In this document: positions 5,780 to 36,480 of the stretch, one piece after another | Layout: every line of letters begins with the position of its first letter | Numbering within the stretch: the stretch's first letter is position 1 | DNA from: Bispira polyomma | Lineage: Eukaryota | Assembly (NCBI GenBank): GCA_965649765.1 | Contig: OZ287755.1 | Coordinates: 36,456,001-36,520,000, forward strand | Length of the DNA: 64,000 nucleotides | Direction of reading: 5' to 3' | The notes under the pieces: model-generated | What the model saw: the letters and a program-made list of their open reading frames with translations, nothing else | Told to the model about the DNA's origin: nothing | Databases searched by the model: none | Program-made: the position numbers and the translations under genes

Positions 5780-8700
5780 CTGTTTGAGCGCTTTATTTTT
5801 GATATACATGTTAGTATATGTATATACAGGTTAACAATTTGTAAAATAAATGTTTAAAATTTTATAATTTTTTAAGCCCCAAGCCCAACTAGAAAGAAGA
5901 AGGAATGGCTGATGCGCAAAAGTAATAGGCACTAAAGATACATTGTGATTAAATGCAAAAGTTGCACCAGATCTTCTGAAAGTATGGAATCCATGTGATA
6001 AATATTGAATGACAATGTGTGTTAAAACTTTCTCTAGTGCGGTTCGCACATGTGTTTCTACTACAGTTTGATATTAAATTGTGCTAACTGCAAACAGTGG
6101 TGCAGTAGGAGGTAGGGTTCTAGAAGCTAATAATTTTTATAATGCCAAAACAGGACAGAACCTTGTTCTGCAATTGTGGTATCTGTATGATGTGTGTGTC
6201 CCTTGTTTTGCAAATTTTTGACCTACTTCAGAATGATGTGAGCCCCAGGGTGTCCAAAAATTATGGCTTGTCTGAGTAAATGTCTGCTGCTATCAAATAA
6301 AGCCCTCGAATGTGGGGCAATATTGGACAGTCTTAGGAAAGCAATGTAAGCCAGTAAAAATAAACCCCTATATAGTACGGGATCATCCAGGATGTCACAA
6401 GCCATGGAAATTTTAGCTAACTGAAATTTAACTTAAAACTAATTTAGATTAATGTCTTATGTTTAGGACGACATGTAGAGTTTATTGTTATACTCCTGAT
6501 GAATAATGCGACAGCATTGTGGGTAAAGAGGGCTAAATCCCAATTTAACTTTTTTGCAATAAATTTGAGAGATGAAATATAATTTGCTACCACAGCTGGC
6601 GAAGTATTGTTTTGAATGAGATATTCCATGAAAGCCAACACTGAATGAACTGAGATATTAGTAATACATGCAAACTGATTGAATGCCAGGAAAGTTTTAA
6701 ACTGATTGTTATAACTAATAGTTGTCTTTGGTCATAAAGCTGTGTCAGTTCTACTGCATGCTGAGCTCATGAAGTGTTGACTGATGAAAGTAGAACCTGA
6801 AATTATATAGATAGATTTAGGTTAAAATGTTTAATTGGCACTACTTCCCAGTTAAAATTATTATATAAATTATACAGTGTCTCCCTATTGGGTGGTGTTT
6901 CACAATAAAATATGGATAATGCATCAGCTGTCACATTATGTCTGATATTAATAGTGATATCATGTGTAGCTGTTATTAGCCATATATTTTTTAGCAAAGT
7001 GCCAGGAAACTGTCTTTTGTTTTTTGGCTTTCAACAACCAGTACAACGGCCATGTTGTCACAGTAAACAGTCAGTCTACTGCGAGCCCATTTTTCCGCCC
7101 AAATTTTTAAAGCAATAACTATATTGAGCATTTCTAGATGCACAATAGTAAGCTCCTTACCATATACATTATACTATGGTATTGAACATACTTGTTTGTT
7201 CCAAACGCCTCCTAAACCAGATAAGCAAGCGTCCAGATGTAACTCATCCACATTCAGAATTTCCTTTGGATCAATGTAAGTGATACCATTATATTGAGGT
7301 AAAAATTTCTGAAACCATAGTAAATCTCCCTGCATCTCACCAGTAATCTTAAATTTGTTTGAATTCTGGTTATGTCTAAATGTAAATAATAGCCTATTAA
7401 TAAAAGTACGTGCAGGTTGTATACACTTATGAACATAAAGTAGTTTACCTAATAGCGATTGGAATTTTGTATGTGAGATATGACATTTATTTGAGATGTT
7501 ATTTACCATTTCTAAAATTTCTGGTATTTTCTAATGCTGTATACTGTTAGTACCTGCTACTATATCAAAATCTATGCCTAAGCCAAGTTCATGGGAAAAC
7601 TTCATGGTCTAGCAATAATTTACTTAAAATGTTGAAGCCTTTATCCGCTTCCTGCTTATTGCAAATGCAAATGTAGCCATCGAGATAGCAAAATAGATTG
7701 TAGCCACATTTCTTCATATGTGCCGCTATTGTGGTGGAACAACACTTCCGTGTACCCAGCCGAATGCTACCGCAGGAGCCACGTCTTGCCCTTCAGCAAA
7801 TTGTATAGCTAGTTTTAAAGCATCTACTGGATCTACCCTGAGATTACGAAATGCTCTGGCCACATCAATTTTGAATAATACTGGATCTGTTGTTGCCCAA
7901 ATCGCTTCCGTAATATCGTCAATCATGGGAAATTTTAGTAAGAATTTGACCCTATCAAACTGTGTTTTGTTAACATTTCATTCAAGAAACGAAAACCCCG
8001 GAGGGTATAACAAGTTAAGTATAACTCTGCCTTTGTCAACGTCCTTTGGTCTCGTGAGAAGGGGCAAACAATAGTAATATGGTGAATTCACCTTTGCTAC
8101 TGGGCACAACATGATTTCCTTCAACTTTTCTTTAACTAGATATTACCCAACTTCCTCAGAAAATTGTGAAGCAGAAGAGTGAGTTATAACCTTAGCATTA
8201 TTTGAAACAGAATTGTAAAAATGCGCAATATCAAATGCAATATGTTATGTTAGTATTTAATTGTTGAGAGTCAGTCAGTGAGTGATAAAGGAAATTCAAA
8301 TATTATGTATTGTAATAATAATTGGCCTGGATAATCTTTCAACATTTCTTTCCATGCTTTATGGTGAAGGCCTGAAATCAAAGGACTTCTTGCCTGCTTA
8401 TAGTTAGGGAGTCTTGTGCCTCTAATTATAGCAATTTTATCAATTGAATCAATGTTTCTAGGTTTTTGTTCAGGACCTATGAATTCGAATTTTGTTGAAG
8501 ATAATGCCATAAAACATACTTTCTTATCATTTATGGTAATATTTTTAACATTTTCACCAGTTTCAGCCAAGCTAGTTTTGCAGAAGAAATCTTGGATCGG
8601 ACATATGTATATTTTATCTCTAGGCACTCTGTCCAAAGTATGTTGCCTATTCACAGTACTTACTGTTACATTGGTTATGTTAGCCAATGAAGTCTCAGCT

Positions 8701-10660
8701 TTACTGTTGTCTGCTTCTGATTCCACATTACACATTTTATCAATGATATTTGACAAATATTTTGACCATATTTTTTATAACACATGATATCTCTATTATA
8801 CAAATAGTGATCATTCCATGATTGTTGCCTTTCCTGGAGATCTGCCTGATACACCTGTCGATTGGGAATTAAATTTCTAATTTCTCTGGGTACATGAATT
8901 ACTGTGTTATATACATTAATAATCAGTAGCTTATCATGGGGCAAATCAGTCACATGACTGCTGCTCTGTGTGTAAAACTTGTCCGGAAACTGTGACACAT
9001 TATTTCATAAAATGCCCTGCTTATGCTGCTCATAAGTACTTGAATTAATCCACTTGGAAGACCAAGCAAGTTATCACATATTTTAATGTATGGCCCTGGT
9101 CTTTTTAAAATTGATAGAACACTATTCTATATAGTACAGTTGTTTATTTCACACACCAATAGGTTCACTATCAATTAGATTTTAATGTCAAACATATTAC
9201 AAGTCATCCTATTATTCATCTTTTGTACTATGCAATAACTTCTTGTTTTGCCAAATTATCACTCAATAGTGTATAGTATTTCTTTTTGTACCATATCTTG
9301 TTGTTTAACTGTAAAATGTGTTGTTGTGTTTTTTGGACAAGAACCCAAAGTGGCTTGTAGCTGTGGGTAATGGTCGTTAAATAAATGATGTTTAAATAAA
9401 ACATTTAAAAAATCAGTCTCAGATTCATACTTGATTTGATCATCCTGTCCGTGATGATACATATAATAGAAACCACGAATATTTCCTTCTCTACTTTTTA
9501 AGTACACTATGGAAGCCCTAATGAACTAATGCTCACAAAATTGGTTCCAGTTTTTAACACTTACTGTTATCCCATAAGCAATAATGCAGATCTTTCTCTT
9601 GGAAATCAACACAGCCTGAATAATGACTATCTTTAGCCAAGTTATGAGAGATTACGCTGTCGACTTGATTGTCATTTTGTACCTACTGTGAAAACTGTAA
9701 GAGGTCATTATGACTGGTTTGAAAATTCAATTCAGAACAAACATTAATATCAGATTTTTGACTGCTTTCAGATCTGACGGGGATCTTCACAACGTCCTCC
9801 TCTACTACTGCAGGTACATATCTTAACAAGATGAAGTAACATTGGTGACAACATTATTACTAATAACATTTTCTTCATCATGCACATCAAAACTGTAAAA
9901 TACTTCGTTATTTACACAATCTTTACCATTTGTTACATTATGACTACTGTGAGTATTTTCATTACTATTTCTAAGCTCATTATATTCTCCTTATTCTGCT
10001 ATTACACTCAGTTCTAATTGTTCGTTCAACTGGTTATTGAAAAATTTCACTTAAATTCCGGATGATTGGAATCTTTTCCTAAGGTACGGCTGCAATGCCA
10101 ACAAATGTGTCTATAGTTACGGTGATCTGTTTTATGACTACACTTTCAATTGTTATATACTTTACATATAATTTTTGCTTCACTACTACTAGTTACACTG
10201 CTGGAAGAGGTACCATTCAACATGGCCATCTGTAAGGCACTTAGCCCGTTAAGTGCCCATTGAGTGTCGTTCTGCAACGAAAGCTTCCTTAAAGGCAGAG
10301 ATTACCTGTCGGATCATGTGCCTCATCTTGTTGGGATCTGTTATAAGGAGCGAGTTCGCTAGCTGCCCTGCCATCCACTGAGGCATCGACAAATCGTCAA
10401 ATGCCAGCTCCTTCTTAGCTGAACCTTCTACCCAGCCCTCATTTGGCCACCGAAATCTAGCTGTAGTCGGCTGTAGTTACATCAGTGCTATTAAATCTAC
10501 CTGACTTGTGTTTTAATGAGATAAATTATGTTGAGCCATAGTCGTGTACTGGGCTAACTGTCTGGTCACTTCCGACTGGATGTGTGGCAGCGAACTCAGC
10601 GCGTCTAAATTAGGCTCAATGCCATCTTGTCGAAATTCGGCCCCTGTATGAGCAGAGTGT
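5780..10660 (-). mobile_element. Degenerate Ngaro-like YR retrotransposon (gag, RT/RNase H, YR relics)
   Basis: Fragments are colinear with the 29273-36018 element: FHTFRRSGATFAF (YR), LHLDACLSGLGG (RNase H), FKIDVARAFRNL (RT), and the gag DDLSMPQWMAGQLANS region at about 10350-10400. Confidence 0.9.
8995..9255 (+). mobile_element. Short LINE 3'-end fragment inserted in the YR relic
   Basis: Reads HYFIKCPAYAAH...ILMYG...FISHTNRF, typical of LINE ORF2 C-termini. It interrupts colinearity of the host relic. Confidence 0.5.
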
Positions 10661-12904
10661 ATATTTGTTGAAACCTTACACTATTTCTTATTCTTAGAAA
10701 TTTTCCAAGAATGATCATTGATTCTAAGCTAAGATTGCTAAGAAAAAGACTTGACATTCTTATGTATTTGATGAATGTTTGTGTGACCTTCTCCAGGAAG
10801 ATATGGGACCTATTTTAATAACATTCTTACTCTTAAAATTCCTGTTATTCTTAGATTTCTAAGAATAATTCTAAGTATAAGAAATTTGGTATTCACTAAA
10901 ATCTTATTCGCCACATTTGAAGATGGGAGTATTGTAAACAGTGGTCACACAATTATCAGAAAACACATATGCCTACACTTCTATGCACAATTTATCGCTA
11001 AAAAATTATTACTATAATAATTAATTGTTAACTGAGATTTGACTTGTAAATACGATTTCATTTTGAGAATAAAAAAATTCTTAGTATTAAAATTTTGTAA
11101 TTTCAAGAAGTCTAAGCCCTTGCGAGTCCCTTGGAGATACTTCCCCCCCCCCTCCAAAAAAAAGGTGCCACATTTAAATATTAGTGATGAATATATGTTT
11201 TCATTTCTGCTGATAACCTGCCGAGTGTTGTCCATTCTGTCCACATTTCCAGGCATTATCCATATCTTTGCTTTCAATGGCCTGTATGTCGCGGTACATA
11301 TCAACTATGTAGCAACTTGCATTACAACACATCTGGCTTATGTAGCGTTCACACCTTTACATTATCCAGAGTAATTGACTCCCAATCTCAAGAACTTGTA
11401 TGAACTGAAGTAAACGTCTGTCATCTAGGCATAAACTGGGCATGAACTGGAAAGAATAGGAAGCAGAGACGGAGATTTTGAACATGTTCAAAACTTCCGT
11501 GGGTGGTCAGCTCTAACAGCACATCTGGAGAAAACTGGAAACAAGGGGTGTGGTCGGGGAATAAACAGGGCACAAACAGGTATAAATTGCTTAGAACTTG
11601 TGTGATATGGACAGGACTGCTGTAATCTGGAGCCAAAGTTGCATAAATGTGTGATGATATGCTTAGATATAATATGGTCCGAGCATAAACTGGTCACAAA
11701 CTTGTAAGATCTATTTAAAACTGGGCATATCATGTGGATAACCTGGGCTTAAAAGGGGCAAAATCCTTTATATAAATTAGGCATATCCCGGGAATGATCT
11801 GGTGAATGATATGCAAAGGATCATTGTCACCAAGTCCCTCCAGATCATTCATTTTCTATTGATTGGGTTTAAACTGCTAACAAAGTGGCAGAGAACTTGA
11901 TAGTGTGAAAGCTATATTAAATACAACCGAAGATGTCAAACTTTTCTGAGCAACAGTAAAACCAATTGCTTTAAAAGTAGTAGTCTGCTATTAATGATAA
12001 ATTTTGATCATTGTATTCTAGTTCTGTGTTTTTCTTAAATTTTGCTCCAACTGTTTCATTCTAATTTATTTACAATATGCCATTAAATTATTATAATTAC
12101 TATTCATCAATAGCCTTTTTTCATGAAATCACTTTTTTTAATTGAAAGAAAATTGGAATAAAACTTTGACAAAAAAAAATGATATAATCCACACTATGTC
12201 ATGGTAGAAGTCCAGTTTGCTAAAATTTAGGTAGAAAGTGCAATTGGACATGTATATCCTATCATATTTGTCATATTGTTTCAGTCGAGCTACACCCTGT
12301 ACTATATCACAATGATTTTTTAAGACGAGTGGCATATATCCTAAATTCTGATTAGTTGTGAGTGCATTATATTATTGCTAAGGCTGCGAGGTAGAGTGTG
12401 TGAAGTGCATCAATTATAGCCCCACACAGACACACTCGATACATCAAAAAACCCATTCCAACTAAATAAAGTACTAATACAAACCTAAACTCTACTATTT
12501 ATTATATTTTCCACAATATAACTTCAAATTTAGGTGTAAATAAGCATAAAGTTACATTTCATGTATCTACTATTTATATCTTTTCCTAGGCAACAATGTG
12601 CTTTTGGACGCACACTAAAATTTGGCCAATAGGGAGTGGAATAAAATATTAAAGTAAAATCGATGCATCGGTATGTTTACCACAGTCGATTAATGCATCA
12701 ACAAAACAACTAATCGCCAAAGCCTTAATTATTACTTCCGCTGATTTCTTCATTTATAAACTACCCATTGTAAAGTTGATGGAAATGTAAATTTTATATG
12801 GCAAAGGCTCACAAATAAACATACAACAATAAATACAAGCTATCTATAATTACATTTTAGAACAGTAATATTATTTTGTTAAGCTTTGAATTTAGTTAAG
12901 TTTT

Positions 12905-27152: not shown

Positions 27153-27692
27153 ATTGACAAGTTGCAGTCCATTCAAAACTTTCTTTATAGAGTCATCTTT
27201 CGTCTGGAAATCCGTACTGATGTCACTCCATACCTCAAGAAACTTCACTGGCTTCCTATTCACTATCGATTCCTGTTTAAAATGGACGTAACTATTTTTA
27301 AAGCTGTAGTCTCTCAACAGCCTCACTACCTCACTACCAAACTCTCCCTCAGCAACCTTACAAGGGAAAAAAGACTGTGTTTCCATTAAAAAAAACCACC
27401 AAGAGGGTTAGAACTAGAGCCTTCTTGGTGGCCGCACCTAGTGTATGGAACAGTCTTCCAGCTGAACTTAGACTGATTGAAACACTTTCAGGTTTTAGGA
27501 AAAAGCTCAAAACCCATCTCTTCCGACTCGCCTATCCCCCGTAGTACTCTTCCTGGGCACTGACACATCCATCCTTACGACCTGGCTATGTTTTTCATTT
27601 TTCTATTGGCAGTTTGATTCTGATGTTGTGCCTTAGAAGATGCCTAGCATCAATAAGGTGCTTTAAAAATGCACAATACAATACAATACAAA
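27153..27692 (+). mobile_element. L2/CR1-type LINE 3' part (continuation of 19500-21621)
   Basis: IDKLQSIQN...LKKLHWLPI...APSVWNSLP...FRKKLKTHLF and a (CAATA)n tail. Confidence 0.9.
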
Positions 27693-27899
27693 ATGGCATT
27701 GGATTTCCAGCAACCATGTTTCTGAATGTATTGCAGTTTGACATTAGCGTTAAAAGCAAGGGAGGCACCAGACCTTCTGAAACAGTGAAAACTGTTGCCT
27801 TGAGTGGAGATTCCCAATTTTATAACAAGACATCTAAGAGCTTCTCATTGTTTACTATCCGAAATACATTTACCCCATAGCCTGGGTGAGCAAGTAATG

Positions 27900-29272
27900 G
27901 TGCCTGATAGCTGCTATGTAATTATTTCTGACCTTGTATGATATACCTGGTGGAGGTACCATATTAAAGCAAGCAAAGATGACATAGTGAAATGCTCCTC
28001 AATATTATAGTAAACGATAAAAGCCAGGTAAAGTCTAAATTCTCTGTCATACTGTTGTTGAGTCCTGGGTCGTTGGCTGTCTCTGATCTTAACCATGGTA
28101 TCAGAAATCATAGTTCTAACAGCTGATGAAGTTCTTGAAATTATATGTCATTATTCATTAAGAAGTAGTCAACCTTAATTTCTCTTATTATAAAATTATC
28201 TATGATTTCTTATTTAGTGTCCCTAAGTTTTGCTATCTCGATAGCATGTCAGCCACTACATTCTTTTTCCCTTCTATGTGCTTAATTTTTATAGTTAAAT
28301 TTAGTTTTGCACAACAGCTGCATTATCAGATTTAATTTTCTAATAATTTTATCTTTAAATTTGTCTTTCCACAATCTTATTGCTACTAGAAGGCTCAACA
28401 TTTAAAAATGTACTATGGACAAAGCCTGCTTAATACAAAGCGGAAGCAATGATGCAGTAAATACTTCATTGCCTGAAACACCTCCTTTCCCTTCTAGACA
28501 AGCATCTACCTGTAAAGATGTTTCTTGGTTTATATCATCACTATTATATTTGGTGGTCCCGTTGTAATCAAATAAGAAGTTGAAGAACCAATTAAGATCT
28601 CGTTTACAACAGGCAGATAACTTTATTGATTTTTCGTCAGTCGCGCTTCTCAGTAATGTTTTAAAGCTTGCCCAGCAAGGACTGATATTTACTTTTTGTA
28701 ACTCTAATAAACGTAGTGAATTCAACACGTTCCATAGATTGCTTTCAACTTGTCATCGTCAATGCTGAGGGTTTTTCATTCGCGTCTATTGTAATGCCCA
28801 TACACGTAACGCGAGTACTGGGGGCTACTAATTTATTCCTATTTATGGGCAAACCTAAATAACCTTATATTTTTGCAGAAATTCATAAGCTAAGGTCACC
28901 CTATCTTCAGTATATACAATTACAAAATCGTCTGTGATGTTATGTTCTCTCATGATGTACGTCACTGCGTCGGAAGTACGCATAAAGACTGCCGTGCCGT
29001 GGCATAATCCGAATGCGAGGGTTAAATGTACATATACTTTTTATTACCAGTTATAACCCAGTTTTAGGCAATTAAAAGGGTCCACCCGCAAATTTCAAAA
29101 GGCGTGAGCCAAGTCCACCTTTGCTAATTTCACTGATGGTCTTATGTGTTTTATTCTGTCAACAATCTTGACAATGGTAGGCAATTTTAACTCAAAGTTA
29201 TTTCCATCATAAATCCTCTTCAGTGTACAGTCGTTTACTGGAGCCCCACTTGGGTGCGACAGATTTAAAATT
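27900..29272 (-). mobile_element. Older degenerate YR retrotransposon (RT-RNase H-YR N-terminus), left part
   Basis: ILNLSHP, KVDLAHAF, LQVDACLEG, RPRTQQQYDREFRLYLAF. It continues at 36019. Confidence 0.85.
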
Positions 29273-29426: not shown

Positions 29427-30302
29427 TCACGGCTACCATAAAATACAGCCGGGTCAAAAATAAAAACCCATAACAAAGCTAATAATAAGCTAAGAGACAA
29501 TCACAAATATAAAGAATAGTGTAAACCCCTCAGTCACACCAGACTTTGGATTAGAAACAATAAAATAACCTCAAAAGAGGAAAATACATTTAAATACATT
29601 GATTACTATAAACATGACTATCATTAACATCACCTTCAACTAGTTCATTGTGTGAATAATGTACTGTAATATACAACAAAGTTACTTTTGGTGACTAAGA
29701 TACTAAGAACAATTTCAGGGGATAAACTTCCCTGTTTACTGTAAATTCTGACATGTATTTGTGATACATGGATACTAATTGACGCTAGGTGATCGTGTAC
29801 AAAAAGGTGCCCTTGGGGGGACCACACGTGTACCCAAGTTATCGTCATTGTGTCTAAATTGGTACGTTGTGTTACTTATTCAACAAGTGGTATTAACTAG
29901 CTCAGTAAGCGTCCCTTGGATCGTTAACTTGAGTCATATGAAGCTGACCACTCTAATGTCGCATATGTTATAACCCCATATGAGTCAATGTTCAACTATG
30001 CTTATAAATTGAAAATAAGTCCATGCAAGAGAGAACATGCAACGTAGTAACAGCAGGACCCCGGGCCTTGGACACCAACCGCCTAGCAGGGTGAAGTCCA
30101 ACCTCTCAGAGCCCCTTATTCCACTCTGGAACCCCAGTGGTGAACTCAGAGGAGGGAGTAAGAAGGAAGGACCCCAGACCCACACGGCCCGGAGCCCGGC
30201 CGCCACGTTGCCGTCAAACCTGCCTGGATAACCTTATGCATCAGAGAACCTTAAAAATTTCTATAAATCCTTAATAACGCTGTGGTAAGGGGAGGTGGTG
30301 GG

Positions 30303-30679
30303 TTTCAATTTTCTAAATAGCCTGTTCACAGGTGAAAACACAAATTCAATATGGAGGATAGCTATCCTAGCTTAGGGGTCACTAATAGCTAATGCTGTGA
30401 TTGGACAAGGCCCAGATGGACAGACAGTTGGATAATGCTATTGCATTCGCTAGGGATTAAGGTAGTGTGATAGAAAAAAGAGGTTGGACTGATCTAGCAG
30501 TCCCCTGGGGTGGACTTGCTATGCACAGTCCAATGGTGGTGTGAAAAGTTATAAGTTAATAAGTAAGTTTATTATAAGACAGTAAAAGATTGCATTTGAG
30601 GTTTTTATTTACATGTTAGCTTATGTACAGGTTGACAATCAAAGTCAGTTAAAATTTCAGGATGGAATTTTAAGCCCCA
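30303..30679 (-). repeat. Internal B1-A2 junction repeat
   Basis: A2 (223 bp) differs from A1 at 2 positions and directly abuts B1 at ATGCA|CAGTC. Confidence 0.95.
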
Positions 30680-30686
30680 AGCCCAA

Positions 30687-31660
30687 CTAAGAAGGAGGGA
30701 TAGCCGCAGCAAAGGTGAGAGGCACCACTGAAGCAGCTTGGGAGGTCTTCTGTAGGTAGGTCCATACAGCTGAAGACCTCCACAGGCCATGGGACATAAT
30801 ATTCTGCAGTGATACGTTTTTATTGAAAGCAAATGTGGCCCCCTACCTCCTAAATGTGTGGAACCCGTGTGAATGGTATGGAATGCCTATGTGTTCTAAG
30901 ACTCTCTGTAATGCGACTCTCACATGTGTCTCTATGACTGGGTAAAATGGTGGTGAGTTAACTGCAAACAGTGGTGCAGATGGAGGGAGAGGCCTAGACA
31001 AGATAAGCTGCTGTATAGCCCTTACTGGACATAAAATTTGGTTTTGAAGTGAAGGAATTTGTATAATGTGGGAGTCTGATTTGTTTTGAAGGTTCTTAGT
31101 CCATTTCAAGATGACATGGGCCCCAGGAGGGACAAAGATAATATCCTGTCTAAGAAAGTGCCTAGATGGGTCAAATGCTGCCCTAGAGTGAGAAGCCAGA
31201 TTGGAAAGTCTCAAGAAGCCGAAAAAGGCTAGAAGGAAAATAGCCCTAAAAAGTACTGGATCCTGCAATATCTGACAAGCTTGGGATATCTGTGTTAACT
31301 GATGTATATCAAACAATCCCTTAGGTCTAGGCCTGAAAGTAGAGTTGATGGTAATGCTTCTCGTAAATAAAGAAACAGAGTTGTGTGTAAAAGGAGCCAT
31401 ACTCCACTGTAATTTGTTAGCCATAAATTTAAGTGATGAGAGGTAATTGGCAATGACAGCCGGTGAAAGGCTATTCTGTGCTAAGTATTCTAAGAAAGCC
31501 AAAACTGATGAAACATTAATGTGTTTAATGCCAGCAACATGTAAGAAAGCTAAAAATGTCTTGAATTGGTTACTGTAAGCTGTAGTGGTCTTTGGTCGCA
31601 GTGCCAAGTCTATTCTGTTGCAGGCTGATTGAACAAGTGTATGAGTGGAACTGGCAGAAC
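30687..31660 (-). pseudogene. Tyrosine recombinase with one in-frame nonsense codon (30843-30845)
   Basis: AFFGFLRLSN, KWTK, CPV, HTFRR*GATFAF...HGLWRSSAVWTY. No ATG; begins at a TTTCAG acceptor. Confidence 0.92.
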
Positions 31661-31666
31661 CTGAAA

Positions 31667-34414
31667 TTACACAGATAAGGCCAGGTCAAAGTACCTTATA
31701 GGGACCTCATTCCATTTATAACAATTTTGTAATTTAACAGTTAGCTCTGCAGTAGGAGGTTTATCTGAAAATAGTCTAGAAAACGCATCTGCAATCACAT
31801 TATTTTTCCCTGAAATGTGTTGTATGTCAATTGTGATGTCATGTGTGGCTGCAAGCAGCCAGATATTCCTCAAACATGAGGGCAGAAAGTCATCCTTAGT
31901 TTTTTGTGAATTCACAACCAGTACTACGGCCATGTTGTCACAGTGAAACAAAACCCGTTGATGCGCCCACTTTAATGCCCATACACGCAACGCGAGAATG
32001 ATATTCAGCATCTCTAAGTGAACTATTGTCAACTCTCTGCCAAAAACATTGAAATATGGTGTAGCGTACACCTCATCTTTCCACACGCCTCCTAAACCGG
32101 TAAGGCAAGCGTCTAAATGTAACTCACTCATGTTTTGAATCATAGGATGGTCAATGAAAGTTACTCCGTTAAATGCCTGTAAGAACTGCTTGAACCACGC
32201 TAAGTCGTTCCGCATGTCTTGAGAAATAGCAAATTTCTTCTTACCCTCGTTGTTTCTAAATGCGTGAAGCAGTCTATTAATAAAAGTGCGTGCCGGCTTG
32301 ACGCATTTGTGCACATACAGAAGTTTCCCTAAGAGGGACTGAAACCGACTGCGCGTTATGAAGCGCCTGTTAAACACGTCGCACACACATTCAAGAATCT
32401 CTTCTATTTTCCCATGCTGGATGCTAATAGTACCAGCGACAGTGTCAATGTTAATACCCAAACAAGTAATGCTAGTACTAGGTGGGGTGCGTTTGTTGGC
32501 ATTCATGGGGAGACCTAAATAGTCTAGCAGTTTGGTCAAAATCTGAAAACCCCTGTGAGCCTCTACTCTATTGGAGACGCAAATGTAATCGTCGATGTAG
32601 CAGAACATATTGAAACCGTTTTTGCGCATGTATGACGCTATTGCGTCAGAGCAGCGTTGAAATGCCGCGCTGCCATGAATCCAGCCAAACGCCACCGCAG
32701 GATCTATGTAACTACCCTCTTTAAACTGGATTCCTAATTTTACAGCGTCGACAGGATCTACATGCAAATTACGGAAAGCACGAGCTACGTCGATTTTAAA
32801 CAATACCGGATCATCTGTGACTTTGACCGCACTAGTAATATCATCGATTGTAGGAAATTTCAGAATAAATTTTTTCCCATCAAACATATTCTTATCAACA
32901 TTCTCATTAAGCGAATTGCCTTGTGGGTATGAGAGGTTAAGAATTACCCTACGACTAGTAATGTCCTTGGGACGTGTGAGAAGTGGTGAACAATGGTAAT
33001 GTGAGGAGCTAACCTCCTTCACTGGGCCCAACATGGCACCCTTATTACTTTCTTTAACCAGATATTCTCTCACACTACTTGTGTGTTGGAGGGCAGAATA
33101 ATGATTGGTAACAGAGGCATTGTTAAGCATTTCTGGATTGGTGAGAGAAAGAGGAAAGCCGAATCTAATGTACTGACACAGCAACTGGTCAGGATAATCT
33201 TGGAAAACTTCATCCCATGCATCTGGATTAAGTCCTGACACCAGGGGAACCCTTGCTTGTCTATAATTGGGAAGTGCAGTGTCTCTGATAACAGAAGCCA
33301 CTTGCAGCATGTCTTCTACTGTTTCAATTCTCTTAACAGGTTTGTCAGGACCTATGAATGTGAATGCTGTTGAGGAAAGTGCCAAGAAACCCATGGTTTT
33401 CTCGGGGTCATTAAAGTCCTTAATTTCTTTGTACAAATCCTTGTTTGCTCGAACACTATCAACCATTTGAGTGAATTCATTGCTCGACGAGTTCATGTAT
33501 ATTTTATCACAAATCAGACTGTTTACAGTCTCACTTGGTTTTTGTGTACTTACATTTGACAAGTCTGCACAATTGTCTGACTTATGGCAATTGTCAGGTG
33601 TTTCATCTTCACTGTCACTAATAAGTGCATCTACTAACCTGGTCATGTATTCAGTATAATCGAAACCCAACTGTTTGAAACAGGCATTATCTCTTTCGAA
33701 ATAATAAAATGTATCAGCAGCTTGCTTGATCACAGCCTGGTGATGAGTTTCCACATTAGTATTACTGGTAGTATTTGAAGAAACAGCCTGAACCTGGATT
33801 ATGGTTTGAAAGGTTTGAATAATACAAAGGTTTTGGCTAGGTGGAAATTCAACACGAGCATATAGACACTTGGCAGCAGTCATGTCATAAAACATGTGGA
33901 AATAACCTGAGAATTTTCCATCCCTATCCCTAATGTAAACAATTGGGGCCAAATTTTGAATTTCCCCACAAAAAGTTTTCCAATTGGTAACTGATACCTG
34001 ACACGTGTGTGCCTCTTTGTTCCAAGCTGGTGAATTAGCATAGTGACTGCTCCCATTTGAAATGCAGGCCTCAGTGCTCCTGTCCCATCTATGGTGACCC
34101 GACTGGGTCCTGCTCTGAAATTGAATACATTCATTTACATTCTTGGTTTCATACTGGTAGTTGTCGCCAGCATCTACTGAAACTGCAAAATTATTAAAGA
34201 CATCATTATCAACAAAGTTCACCTTTATATCAGTGTTGAATACATTATTGACAAACCTTGTACTATCTGACATTATCATCTGCTGATAATCATTACTATT
34301 GGAACTTTGCACAATTGTATTAATTTCAGACATGCTTCTGTCGCAATAACCTAATTCCCTGTTTTTGTCCTTTATATTAAACTCTTTTACAAATTTACTG
34401 TTACCGTTCATCAT
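31667..34414 (-). CDS. Reverse transcriptase-RNase H polyprotein with long N-terminal extension
   Basis: Intact 915-aa ORF with KIDVARAFR, FGW, CYIDDY, HLDACLTGLGG, HLEML, CDN and NVIADAFSR. Confidence 0.93.
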   Translation of the reverse strand: MMNGNSKFVKEFNIKDKNRELGYCDRSMSEINTIVQSSNSNDYQQMIMSDSTRFVNNVFNTDIKVNFVDNDVFNNFAVSVDAGDNYQYETKNVNECIQFQSRTQSGHHRWDRSTEACISNGSSHYANSPAWNKEAHTCQVSVTNWKTFCGEIQNLAPIVYIRDRDGKFSGYFHMFYDMTAAKCLYARVEFPPSQNLCIIQTFQTIIQVQAVSSNTTSNTNVETHHQAVIKQAADTFYYFERDNACFKQLGFDYTEYMTRLVDALISDSEDETPDNCHKSDNCADLSNVSTQKPSETVNSLICDKIYMNSSSNEFTQMVDSVRANKDLYKEIKDFNDPEKTMGFLALSSTAFTFIGPDKPVKRIETVEDMLQVASVIRDTALPNYRQARVPLVSGLNPDAWDEVFQDYPDQLLCQYIRFGFPLSLTNPEMLNNASVTNHYSALQHTSSVREYLVKESNKGAMLGPVKEVSSSHYHCSPLLTRPKDITSRRVILNLSYPQGNSLNENVDKNMFDGKKFILKFPTIDDITSAVKVTDDPVLFKIDVARAFRNLHVDPVDAVKLGIQFKEGSYIDPAVAFGWIHGSAAFQRCSDAIASYMRKNGFNMFCYIDDYICVSNRVEAHRGFQILTKLLDYLGLPMNANKRTPPSTSITCLGINIDTVAGTISIQHGKIEEILECVCDVFNRRFITRSRFQSLLGKLLYVHKCVKPARTFINRLLHAFRNNEGKKKFAISQDMRNDLAWFKQFLQAFNGVTFIDHPMIQNMSELHLDACLTGLGGVWKDEVYATPYFNVFGRELTIVHLEMLNIILALRVWALKWAHQRVLFHCDNMAVVLVVNSQKTKDDFLPSCLRNIWLLAATHDITIDIQHISGKNNVIADAFSRLFSDKPPTAELTVKLQNCYKWNEVPIRYFDLALSV

Positions 34415-34468
34415 TGAATTACCCTTATCACTACCTAATGTTCGTCCAACTGGTTGTGAATCGTGGCC

Positions 34469-35701
34469 CTAGATGTTACCTTGTTGTTTGTCTGGCTGTT
34501 TACTTACATTCGCTTTAAAGCATTTGAACTCTGGGTGCGACGCGTCCTTTCCTAATGTCTTATTACAATACCAACATACATGACGATAATTGCCATGATC
34601 CGCCTTGTGAGTACACTTGCCATTATTAAACAGCTTACAGATGGATTTACTATCTGAAGAAGCCCCATTAGCCAAGTTACTGCCATTGTTGCCTACCATA
34701 GCCATCTGGGAGGCACTGATGCGATTCAGTGCCCACTGAGTGTTGTCCTGCCAGGACAGCCTGCCTTCCTCGATCTCATGCATACTGACAGCCCAGGCTG
34801 TCCTGACAGCAGGCCACGGAAGTGTGGCTGCATCCCGTAGTGCGTGTACCACTTGGTTCACCATAGCTTTCATTGTTGCCGGATCACTTACTTGTAGCGA
34901 GTTGGCCAGCTGGCCAGCCGCCCACTGCGGCAACGTGAGGTCGTCAAAGACTGGCCTTCGGCGAGTCGATCCCCCACCCCAACCTTCGTTAGACCATCTG
35001 AGTTGGGGATCAGCTAAAGTAATATCTGTGGAGTTATAACGACCAGACTCCTGCCTGATTGAGTGCTTACCCTGGACTAGACCCCTCTGGGCCAAGGCTT
35101 CGTAGTCAGCCAGCTGCCTGGTAACGGCCGCCTGCACGTTTGGAAAAGATCTTAATGCATCGAGACTGGGGACAATGCCATCTGTGTTGTAACCCTGACC
35201 TGTTGGTGGTTGCATCATAGGTTGAGCCAGCGGCTGCGCGACCCCGTTGTACCTGGGAGGGGGAAGAAGTAACGAATAACCCTCGTGTCTCTGTTCGACC
35301 ACCGTACCATCCCTCATGGTGTGTAATGGAGAATTAGCGGGTGTAACTGTCTGTTTGTCCTCTACGAGTTGCAATCGCCGGGTTATGTTAGCGTTGGAGG
35401 TCTCCAGACCACGCAGGATGGAAAGAACCTCGGACATGCTTTGTGACTCGACTTGTGACTGGGGTACGGCCTGAGATGAGAGCCCGGCTTGGCTAGATGA
35501 TCCATTTGAACTGGTCAATAACTGAGAATCAATAAGAGGACACGCAGTGTCGGCAATGACTGTTCTATGTATTTCTGATTGATCGTGAGTATTAGTAGTA
35601 GTTACCTGACCAGTACCCCTTTTCTTGGCTGTACTAGTTGAAGTTGTCTTTGTGGTCTGTTTCTTGCTGCTTAACACAGGAGTTGCTTTTGTTTTCCCCA
35701 T
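34469..35701 (-). CDS. Gag-like ORF1 with C-terminal Cys/His finger
   Basis: First ATG at 35701 (MGKTK). C-terminal CKLFNNGKC...H...HVCWYC...H...C finger as seen in YR-element gag proteins. Confidence 0.85.
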   Translation of the reverse strand: MGKTKATPVLSSKKQTTKTTSTSTAKKRGTGQVTTTNTHDQSEIHRTVIADTACPLIDSQLLTSSNGSSSQAGLSSQAVPQSQVESQSMSEVLSILRGLETSNANITRRLQLVEDKQTVTPANSPLHTMRDGTVVEQRHEGYSLLLPPPRYNGVAQPLAQPMMQPPTGQGYNTDGIVPSLDALRSFPNVQAAVTRQLADYEALAQRGLVQGKHSIRQESGRYNSTDITLADPQLRWSNEGWGGGSTRRRPVFDDLTLPQWAAGQLANSLQVSDPATMKAMVNQVVHALRDAATLPWPAVRTAWAVSMHEIEEGRLSWQDNTQWALNRISASQMAMVGNNGSNLANGASSDSKSICKLFNNGKCTHKADHGNYRHVCWYCNKTLGKDASHPEFKCFKANVSKQPDKQQGNI

Positions 35702-35795
35702 TGCACACAACAATCACTAGTTCCAGTACCACGTCAGTTAATAAAAAGAAGTAAAATATAAATAAAACCAATTCAGTGTAAATACGTGGTTAAAA

Positions 35796-36018
35796 TTTCA
35801 ATTTTCTAAATATCCTGTTCACAGGTGAAAACACAAATTCAATATGGAGGATAGCTATCCTAGCTTAGGGGTCACTAATAGCTAATGCTGTGATTGGACA
35901 AGGCCCAGATGGACAGACAGTTGGATAATGCTATTGCATTCGCTAGGGATTAAGGTAGTGTGATAGAAAAAGGAGGTTGGACTGATCTAGCAGTCCCCTG
36001 GGGTGGACTTGCTATGCA
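35796..36018 (-). repeat. Split direct repeat A1 (5' terminal; contains CCAAT box)
   Basis: Near-identical to A2. GTCCAATCACAGC on the sense strand. Confidence 0.93.
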
Positions 36019-36480
36019 AATTGTCTACTGCCATTGTCTTTTGGCCTGGTTAAAACCAAAATTAAAAGGATTCTAGCACTCTTATAATTTGACTGACCCA
36101 TCTGCTTAATAACGTTGGCTATTTCTATGAGAGTCTTGCGATTTATAATATCAACTGGTTGTCTGCAGGTTATTGATGTCGAGATCCTCTTCCTCAGCTA
36201 CCACAGTTTCCAATACTTTAAACTTCTCAGAACTTGTAAATATAAAATCATAAATTTCCGTTTTAGCAACAAGGCGTCCTATCATGATATTTTCTACTTG
36301 TTGATGCCTTGCTTGTTAACTTAAAAGTTAGGGTGCTTAAGGTAAGGCGGCAAAACCTTCTTCTAGGGGACCTGTGATTGGTCGATATGCTAGTAAACAA
36401 AATTTAAGGTTATTTTACTGTAAACACCTAACTTTTGATGACTGACTTGTCATGCTGTCTGACCCCACAGTGACTTACAA
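36019..36480 (-). mobile_element. Right part of the older YR element, with A-like terminal repeat at about 36320-36480
   Basis: Minus strand reads VLTRPKDNGSRQ up to the insertion point. The terminal repeat is homologous to 17400-17530. Confidence 0.7.

Follow-up and report, generated by a model that had tools for sequence, protein, structure and literature searches.

Here, we analyzed a 64,000-nt stretch of Bispira polyomma contig OZ287755.1 (hereafter the window, whose numbering is used throughout), which carries on its minus strand a young Ngaro-type tyrosine-recombinase (YR) retrotransposon. Comparison of this element with its relatives suggests, with a probability we put at about 0.72, that YR is expressed from a spliced mRNA that fuses the N-terminus of Gag to YR, using a donor inside gag (intron start 35070) and a TTTCAG acceptor located directly past the stop codon of the reverse transcriptase (RT)/RNase H gene. 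A single transcript would then give rise to three products, that is, Gag ending at its TAG stop codon, Gag-RT/RNase H made by readthrough of this TAG, and YR translated from the spliced mRNA. An initial annotation of the window had proposed gag-to-YR splicing with two alternative donors in gag, at 35070 and 34479. Conservation across lineages supports the former donor and the acceptor, but not the latter donor; the positions given for the RT stop, the acceptor AG, both donors and the corresponding junctions in two decayed relatives were all correct on the minus strand. The features on which the argument is built are as follows.

34469-35701, minus strand: gag open reading frame (ORF), with ATG at 35701-35699 and stop TAG at 34471-34469; 410 codons counted from the ATG
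35071-35701, minus strand: proposed coding part of exon 1, comprising Gag residues 1-210 and the first base of codon 211
35065-35074, minus strand: donor 1, CAGG/GTAAGC (slash, proposed exon-intron boundary), exon end 35071, intron start 35070, phase 1, on the codons for Gly211-Lys212
31667-34468, minus strand: RT/RNase H ORF, with stop TAA at 31669-31667 and Pfam matches RVT_1 and RVT_3; body of the proposed intron
31661-31666, minus strand: acceptor TTTCAG, with AG at 31662-31661, directly past the RT stop TAA (31669-31667); its G is codon position 1 of the YR frame
30690-31660, minus strand: YR, proposed coding part of exon 2, 323 codons past the junction codon, with the natural stop at 30689-30687

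For comparison, RT-YR junctions were collected from the same genome, covering the family of the window element (family A) and two further families, B and C, as well as from an assembled genome in the ENA (ERZ22147071; lineages L083, L089, L091, L092 and L094-L098). Other sources were a second ENA assembly (L093), a TARA scaffold (L084), two JGI metagenome contigs (L086 and L087) and a Logan contig (L088); a metagenome scan yielded three loci only. The YR proteins of these lineages are about 30% to about 70% identical to that of family A, and Gag identity to family A ranges from 21 to 51% in an alignment of eight Gag proteins. The gag ORF itself had no Pfam match, and is homologous to ORF1 of 13 other Ngaro lineages.

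On the minus strand, the element reads gag, one TAG, RT/RNase H in the frame of gag, TAA, TTTCAG and a YR frame without a usable ATG. The YR frame lies at -1 relative to RT and opens only at 31685, with a TGA at 31688-31686 just before it, that is, 19 nt ahead of the RT stop. In family A, the context of this stop is GTG TAA TTT, which the YR frame reads as TGT GTA ATT. Consistent with the initial annotation, which had described the YR frame as lacking an ATG, its first Met is found deep in the SAM-like domain (the Met of '...KFMANKL'), and YR likewise has no start of its own in family B, L086, L087, L088, L091, L094 and L097. The catalytic columns of YR (R151, K189, H268, R271, H291, Y302) are conserved. 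The window copy carries an in-frame YR stop at 30845-30843, inside the H-x-x-R-R-x-G motif, and is probably not autonomous, because this position is a sense codon in most other copies and in the contigs of three runs (X1-X3). A YR frame of 324 codons, counted from the junction codon, is open in 16 of the 29 sampled family-A copies in which the junction was located, and is nearly full-length in a few more.

The acceptor is well preserved in this family, with TTTCAG intact in 28 of the 29 sampled copies. Exon 2 would begin at 31660, the second letter of a YR-frame codon, and the intron would thus be in phase 1. The same arrangement recurs across lineages: in intact copies of all of them, a pyrimidine-rich tract ends in YAG, the G of which is the first base of a YR-frame codon, again giving phase 1. 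In most lineages, the acceptor directly follows the RT stop (TAA or TGA, then TTTCAG), and its AG lies 20-21 codons ahead of the YR motif RPxT in ten lineages. Two lineages uncouple the acceptor from the RT stop. In L095, the RT stop lies about 130 nt upstream with YR-frame stops in between, and ttgttgtag/GTAAC ATG sits immediately before YR in phase 1; in L093, the RT stop is about 390 nt upstream, again with intervening YR-frame stops, and tacttgcag/GTAATAGC ATG is found immediately before YR in phase 1. As the acceptor adjoins YR even where the RT stop is distant, it is the start of YR, not the end of RT, to which the signal is tied. The window holds two further, decayed elements with the corresponding junction.

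6797-6805, minus strand: junction TAA-TTTCAG of the family-B relic, a decayed element at about 5972-10668
28135-28143, minus strand: junction TAA-TTTCAA of the family-C relic, a decayed element at about 27692-29271; the AG is gone in this copy

Both had been noted in the initial annotation to share the stop-TTTCAG arrangement. The divergent family-B relic does so, and other family-B copies read ATA TAA TTTCAG GTTCC. The junction of the third element was present where expected as TAA-TTTCAA, and better-kept family-C copies read ATA TAA TTACAG GTAAC. The exceptions to the acceptor pattern are confined to decayed copies: the AG was lost in the family-C relic of the window and in L055, and L085 has its AG in another phase.

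Within the window copy alone, donor 1 is not special. Seven GT sites, distributed over all three phases, score as well as 35070 with our donor matrix, so a signal above chance emerges only from comparison between lineages. This comparison comprised 14 lineages from six sources (A, B, L083, L086, L087, L089 and L091-L098), with family A represented by the window copy. At the homologous Gly, G/GTAA was found in phase 1 in 13 of the 14 lineages. All nine closer lineages (A, B, L083, L089, L091, L092, L096, L097 and L098) use GGT-AAG for the Gly-Lys pair, while the donor codons are GGT-AAA in L093 and GGT-AAT in L095, L086 and L087; the preceding codon is mostly AAG, CAG, AGG or GAG. In L086 and L097, the donor 1 site outscores every other donor in gag.

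This conservation extends to synonymous positions. At the protein level, G211 is one of only 24 invariant columns in the alignment of the eight Gag proteins. When codons were compared in six lineages, a single codon was kept in only 4 of 52 invariant columns of degenerate amino acids, and two of these four are the adjacent donor Gly-Lys pair; none of the six other invariant Gly columns kept a single codon. Conservation of GGTAAG at the Gly-Lys codons of gag was thus borne out together with that of the AG after the stop, while other columns are scrambled. Given pooled codon usage (GGT 0.32, AAG 0.42), the probability of finding GGT-AAG in nine out of nine lineages is about 1e-7, and that of finding GGT at the donor Gly in at least 13 of 14 lineages is about 3e-6; both values assume independent lineages and are optimistic, since the lineages share ancestry.

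The second donor proposed in gag fared differently.

34474-34483, minus strand: candidate donor 2, CAAG/GTAACA, intron start 34479, phase 1, 8 nt ahead of the gag stop

This site is weak: it ranks below 35070 with the donor matrix, has no G at +5, and A or G is found at -1 only in family A. Four lineages (A, B, L089 and L092) carry a phase-1 GT a short way, a few codons, ahead of the gag stop, and L091, L083, L093, L094 and L095 have none there. In some families, donor 2 may serve as a minor alternative, and we do not count it as supported. Two further splice candidates were rejected, namely a 34-nt mini-intron running from AAG/GTACTT (31694) to the same AG, which is out of frame, and an early donor, CAG/GTAACT at 35605, which is in phase 0 and runs into a stop.

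The proposed intron would extend from the donor on the Gag codons Gly211-Lys212 (exon end 35071) to the acceptor past the RT stop (exon 2 from 31660), and splicing would remove the globular C-terminal half of Gag together with the entire RT/RNase H gene. As both sites are in phase 1, translation starting at the gag ATG would run in frame into YR. Exon 1 always ends in the G of a Gly codon and exon 2 starts with GT, AT, AA or GG, so that the junction codon encodes Gly, Asp or Glu and is never a stop; it is also identical to the codon that the genomic YR frame has at this point. Where YR is open, the predicted product comprises about 534 residues, which by arithmetic are Gag 1-210, the junction Gly and 323 YR residues.

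We also considered where the junction would fall in the Gag protein, using an AlphaFold2 model built from the eight-sequence alignment. Overall confidence was low, with a mean predicted local distance difference test (pLDDT) score of 59. In the model, a disordered basic N-terminus precedes a long helix (86-117) and further helices at 180-209. The donor codon falls in a low-confidence linker (208-217), beyond which come a helical C-terminal domain predicted with confidence (pLDDT 80-92) and a Cys/His knuckle. According to this model, the splice would cut Gag at a domain boundary. The long helix encoded by exon 1 is conserved in sequence across lineages and could tether the recombinase to Gag assemblies. 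These features lead us to infer that splicing takes place at both sites and yields the fusion, and that the shared exon plays such a part; splicing could in addition set the ratio of YR to RT, as the initial annotation had suggested.

Expression of RT would follow a different route. In the window element, only the single TAG at 34471-34469 separates gag from RT/RNase H, which is in the same frame, so Gag-RT/RNase H would need readthrough of this codon. The arrangement suggests stop-codon readthrough as the source of Gag-RT; the 100 nt following the gag TAG folded no better than shuffled sequences (z -0.51). The same in-frame gag-TAG-RT layout occurs in L080, L089, L092, L093 and L096-L098, where the TAG is nearly always followed by G. 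L095 (2735-6363) departs from the in-frame TAG layout seen elsewhere, its RT lying at -1 relative to gag, an offset that may reflect another route to Gag-RT or an assembly indel.

Several observations weigh against a spliced Gag-YR fusion. The donor Gly codon is GGC (GGC-AAG) in one decayed copy, L094, the donor matrix was an approximate one, and the shared ancestry of the lineages makes the above probabilities overstate their independence. Neither of the expected joints, 35071/31660 or 34480/31660, was found in the contigs of runs X1-X3, the only runs in which the element turned up; these contigs are of unspecified kind and, with their flat depth, look DNA-like. A Gag-YR fusion protein was also not found among predicted proteins, either by a YR search of 1.84 billion representatives or by word searches with YR and the Gag N-terminus; the longest relatives retrieved were stand-alone YR proteins of up to 420 residues and Gag proteins of up to 427 residues. 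As predicted proteins are mostly ORF calls on genomic contigs, the missing fusion is a weak negative. Finally, an in-frame ATG is located 2-13 codons past the acceptor in four lineages (family C, L084, L093 and L095), and an ATG overlaps the RT stop in L089, so that a fusion is not strictly needed in these five.

These ATGs bring up the possibility that YR is translated on its own from a full-length or internally started RNA, through termination-reinitiation at the RT stop, a non-AUG codon or a downstream AUG. Besides the four lineages with an ATG past the AG, the ATGA at the TGA stop of L089 and perhaps the GTGA in L091 and L088 would fit this scenario. Start-like codons at the stop are, however, missing in A, B, L086, L087, L092 and L098; an AUG at or adjoining the upstream stop was found only in L089, and is absent in A, B, L092, L087 and L098. 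The distance from the AG to RPxT is conserved in length while the position of the ATG wanders, ribosomes are unlikely to reinitiate after translating ORFs over about 4 kb with no known signal, and the conservation of GGTAAG in gag would be left without explanation. We regard an independent start as very unlikely. The same applies to a ribosomal route from RT into YR. YR lies at -1 relative to RT in every scorable lineage, as expected if an RT/RNase H-YR fusion were made by programmed -1 frameshifting or other recoding in the overlap before the RT stop. However, this overlap spans just 19 nt in family A, 10 nt in B and 4 nt in C, holds no X XXY YYZ heptamer, and the surrounding 121 nt folded no better than shuffled sequences (z +0.71, with pseudoknots outside the reach of the tool). 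The distant RT stops of L095 and L093, followed by YR-frame stops, exclude frameshifting as a general mechanism, and it, too, offers no account of the synonymous GGTAAG conservation 3.4 kb upstream in gag.

The splice sites could also be real and the main product still not be a fusion, if splicing serves to bring YR near the 5' end or to remove RT for a regulatory or defective RNA, or if the conserved letters have another RNA role such as U1 binding. An own ATG just past the acceptor in some lineages and the absence of the fusion protein from the database searches speak for this possibility, and translation on the spliced RNA might also start at this ATG in family C, L084, L093 and L095. The lineages with such an ATG nevertheless keep both splice sites in phase. 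Moreover, the donor is located 630 nt downstream of the gag ATG and both sites are in phase 1 in every lineage, so that translation initiated at the gag ATG necessarily continues into YR; a non-coding role would not require that phase be kept over 14 lineages. We consider splicing without a fusion as the main product quite improbable, and return to the spliced Gag-YR fusion in placing the element among known systems.

The Ngaro group of tyrosine-recombinase retrotransposons was reportedly introduced by Goodwin and Poulter in 2004. The window element resembles this group (PMC4157794, PMC3783388) in its order of gag, RT/RNase H and YR, its terminal direct repeats, the lack of methyltransferase, protease or DDE integrase matches, and a YR ORF that is off the RT frame and has no obvious start. 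PMC3783388 and PMC6681497 call the YR ORF no more than overlapping or frameshifted. We found no gag-to-YR intron, splice acceptor or subgenomic RNA described for YR retrotransposons in the searchable literature, the coverage of which did not extend to the founding Ngaro paper.

Spliced subgenomic mRNAs made from one primary transcript are well known from retroviral env, Drosophila gypsy env and the copia gag RNA, and in these retroviral and long terminal repeat (LTR) systems protein ratios depend on how much of the RNA is spliced. Their layout is the same as that proposed here, with a donor near or inside gag, an acceptor ahead of the downstream ORF and removal of the pol region; the Bispira element likewise has consensus splice sites that are placed to make the downstream YR translatable and are conserved among relatives. 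It differs in that the downstream gene encodes the integrating enzyme rather than env and has no start codon of its own, and in that the donor, always in the same phase, is preceded by 210 codons of gag, which would give an N-Gag fusion. Gag-Pol fusions arising by readthrough or frameshifting, such as the UAG readthrough of the murine leukemia virus (MuLV) type, share with the window element the tethering of an enzyme to a Gag part as well as the in-frame gag-TAG-RT layout. In contrast to these, YR would be tethered by splicing instead of recoding, and only the N-terminal half of Gag would be shared. The closest mechanism is the subgenomic splicing of retroviral and gypsy env and of copia; new would be a spliced recombinase without its own start and a phase-locked gag donor yielding a fusion.

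We lean towards considering this a general Ngaro trait, in which an ancient, phase-locked intron would let a spliced mRNA encode the recombinase as an N-Gag-YR fusion. Alongside termination and readthrough at the gag stop, this would provide a protease-less element with three modes of expression, and the shared N-terminal exon would be the module recruiting RT and YR to Gag. If true, this would give a concrete answer to how the recombinases of DIRS/Ngaro elements are expressed, which has so far been left at 'overlapping or frameshifted ORFs', and would account for the many YR ORFs without a start codon. It would correct the annotation of transposable elements, in which YR is now called from GTG, TTG or an internal Met. 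It would further mean that a retroelement without a protease tethers its integrating enzyme to Gag by splicing, not within a polyprotein, and would make the shared N-terminal exon a candidate assembly or targeting module.

The assignment of the element to the Ngaro group is also reflected in its domains and ends. RVT_1 and RVT_3 are found in a 915-aa ORF, followed by Phage_int_SAM domains in the next ORF on the same strand. A Pfam search returned no methyltransferase, protease or DDE integrase, with the RT ORF matching RVT_1 and RVT_3 only (E <= 0.01). Within the RT ORF (31667-34414), about 430 N-terminal residues ahead of RVT_1 have no Pfam match and align poorly between families. Terminal direct repeats flank the element.

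35796-36018, minus strand: 5' copy of the 223-nt terminal direct repeat, 99% identical to the 3' copy
30303-30525, minus strand: 3' copy of the 223-nt terminal direct repeat, 99% identical to the 5' copy

Of the split-direct-repeat layout (A1 ... B1 A2 B2), the 223-nt direct repeat is present at both ends of the element; no short B repeat turned up, although no detailed search for one was made. The 1.04-Gb genome holds more than 400 candidate copies of family A with 96-99% identity. Given this copy number and identity, together with the open YR in 16 and the intact acceptor in 28 of the 29 sampled copies, family A is young and probably active.

The main family contigs of runs X1-X3 showed no listed change on donor 1 or the acceptor. 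Joints seen in the contigs of these runs, for example, 31948/34902 (plus-strand ends CA..AG), represent deletion variants of low depth and are not splice-like. Over 30280-36040, the low-depth joint 31948-34902 represents an internally deleted derivative of the family, while a second low-depth joint, 30314-35906, runs from repeat to repeat and could be a tandem, solo-repeat or circle junction.

The decayed family-C Ngaro (27692-29271) sits about 1 kb downstream of the 3' repeat of the family-A element (30303). Overall, three Ngaro families are found inside 31 kb, which may indicate that insertions are nested or clustered at this site. Relative to other family-B copies, the decayed family-B Ngaro (about 5972-10668, minus strand) is short by about 59 nt at the gag end (near 10048) and by about 70 nt further upstream; these gaps resemble small deletions, and their positions do not coincide with the proposed splice sites.

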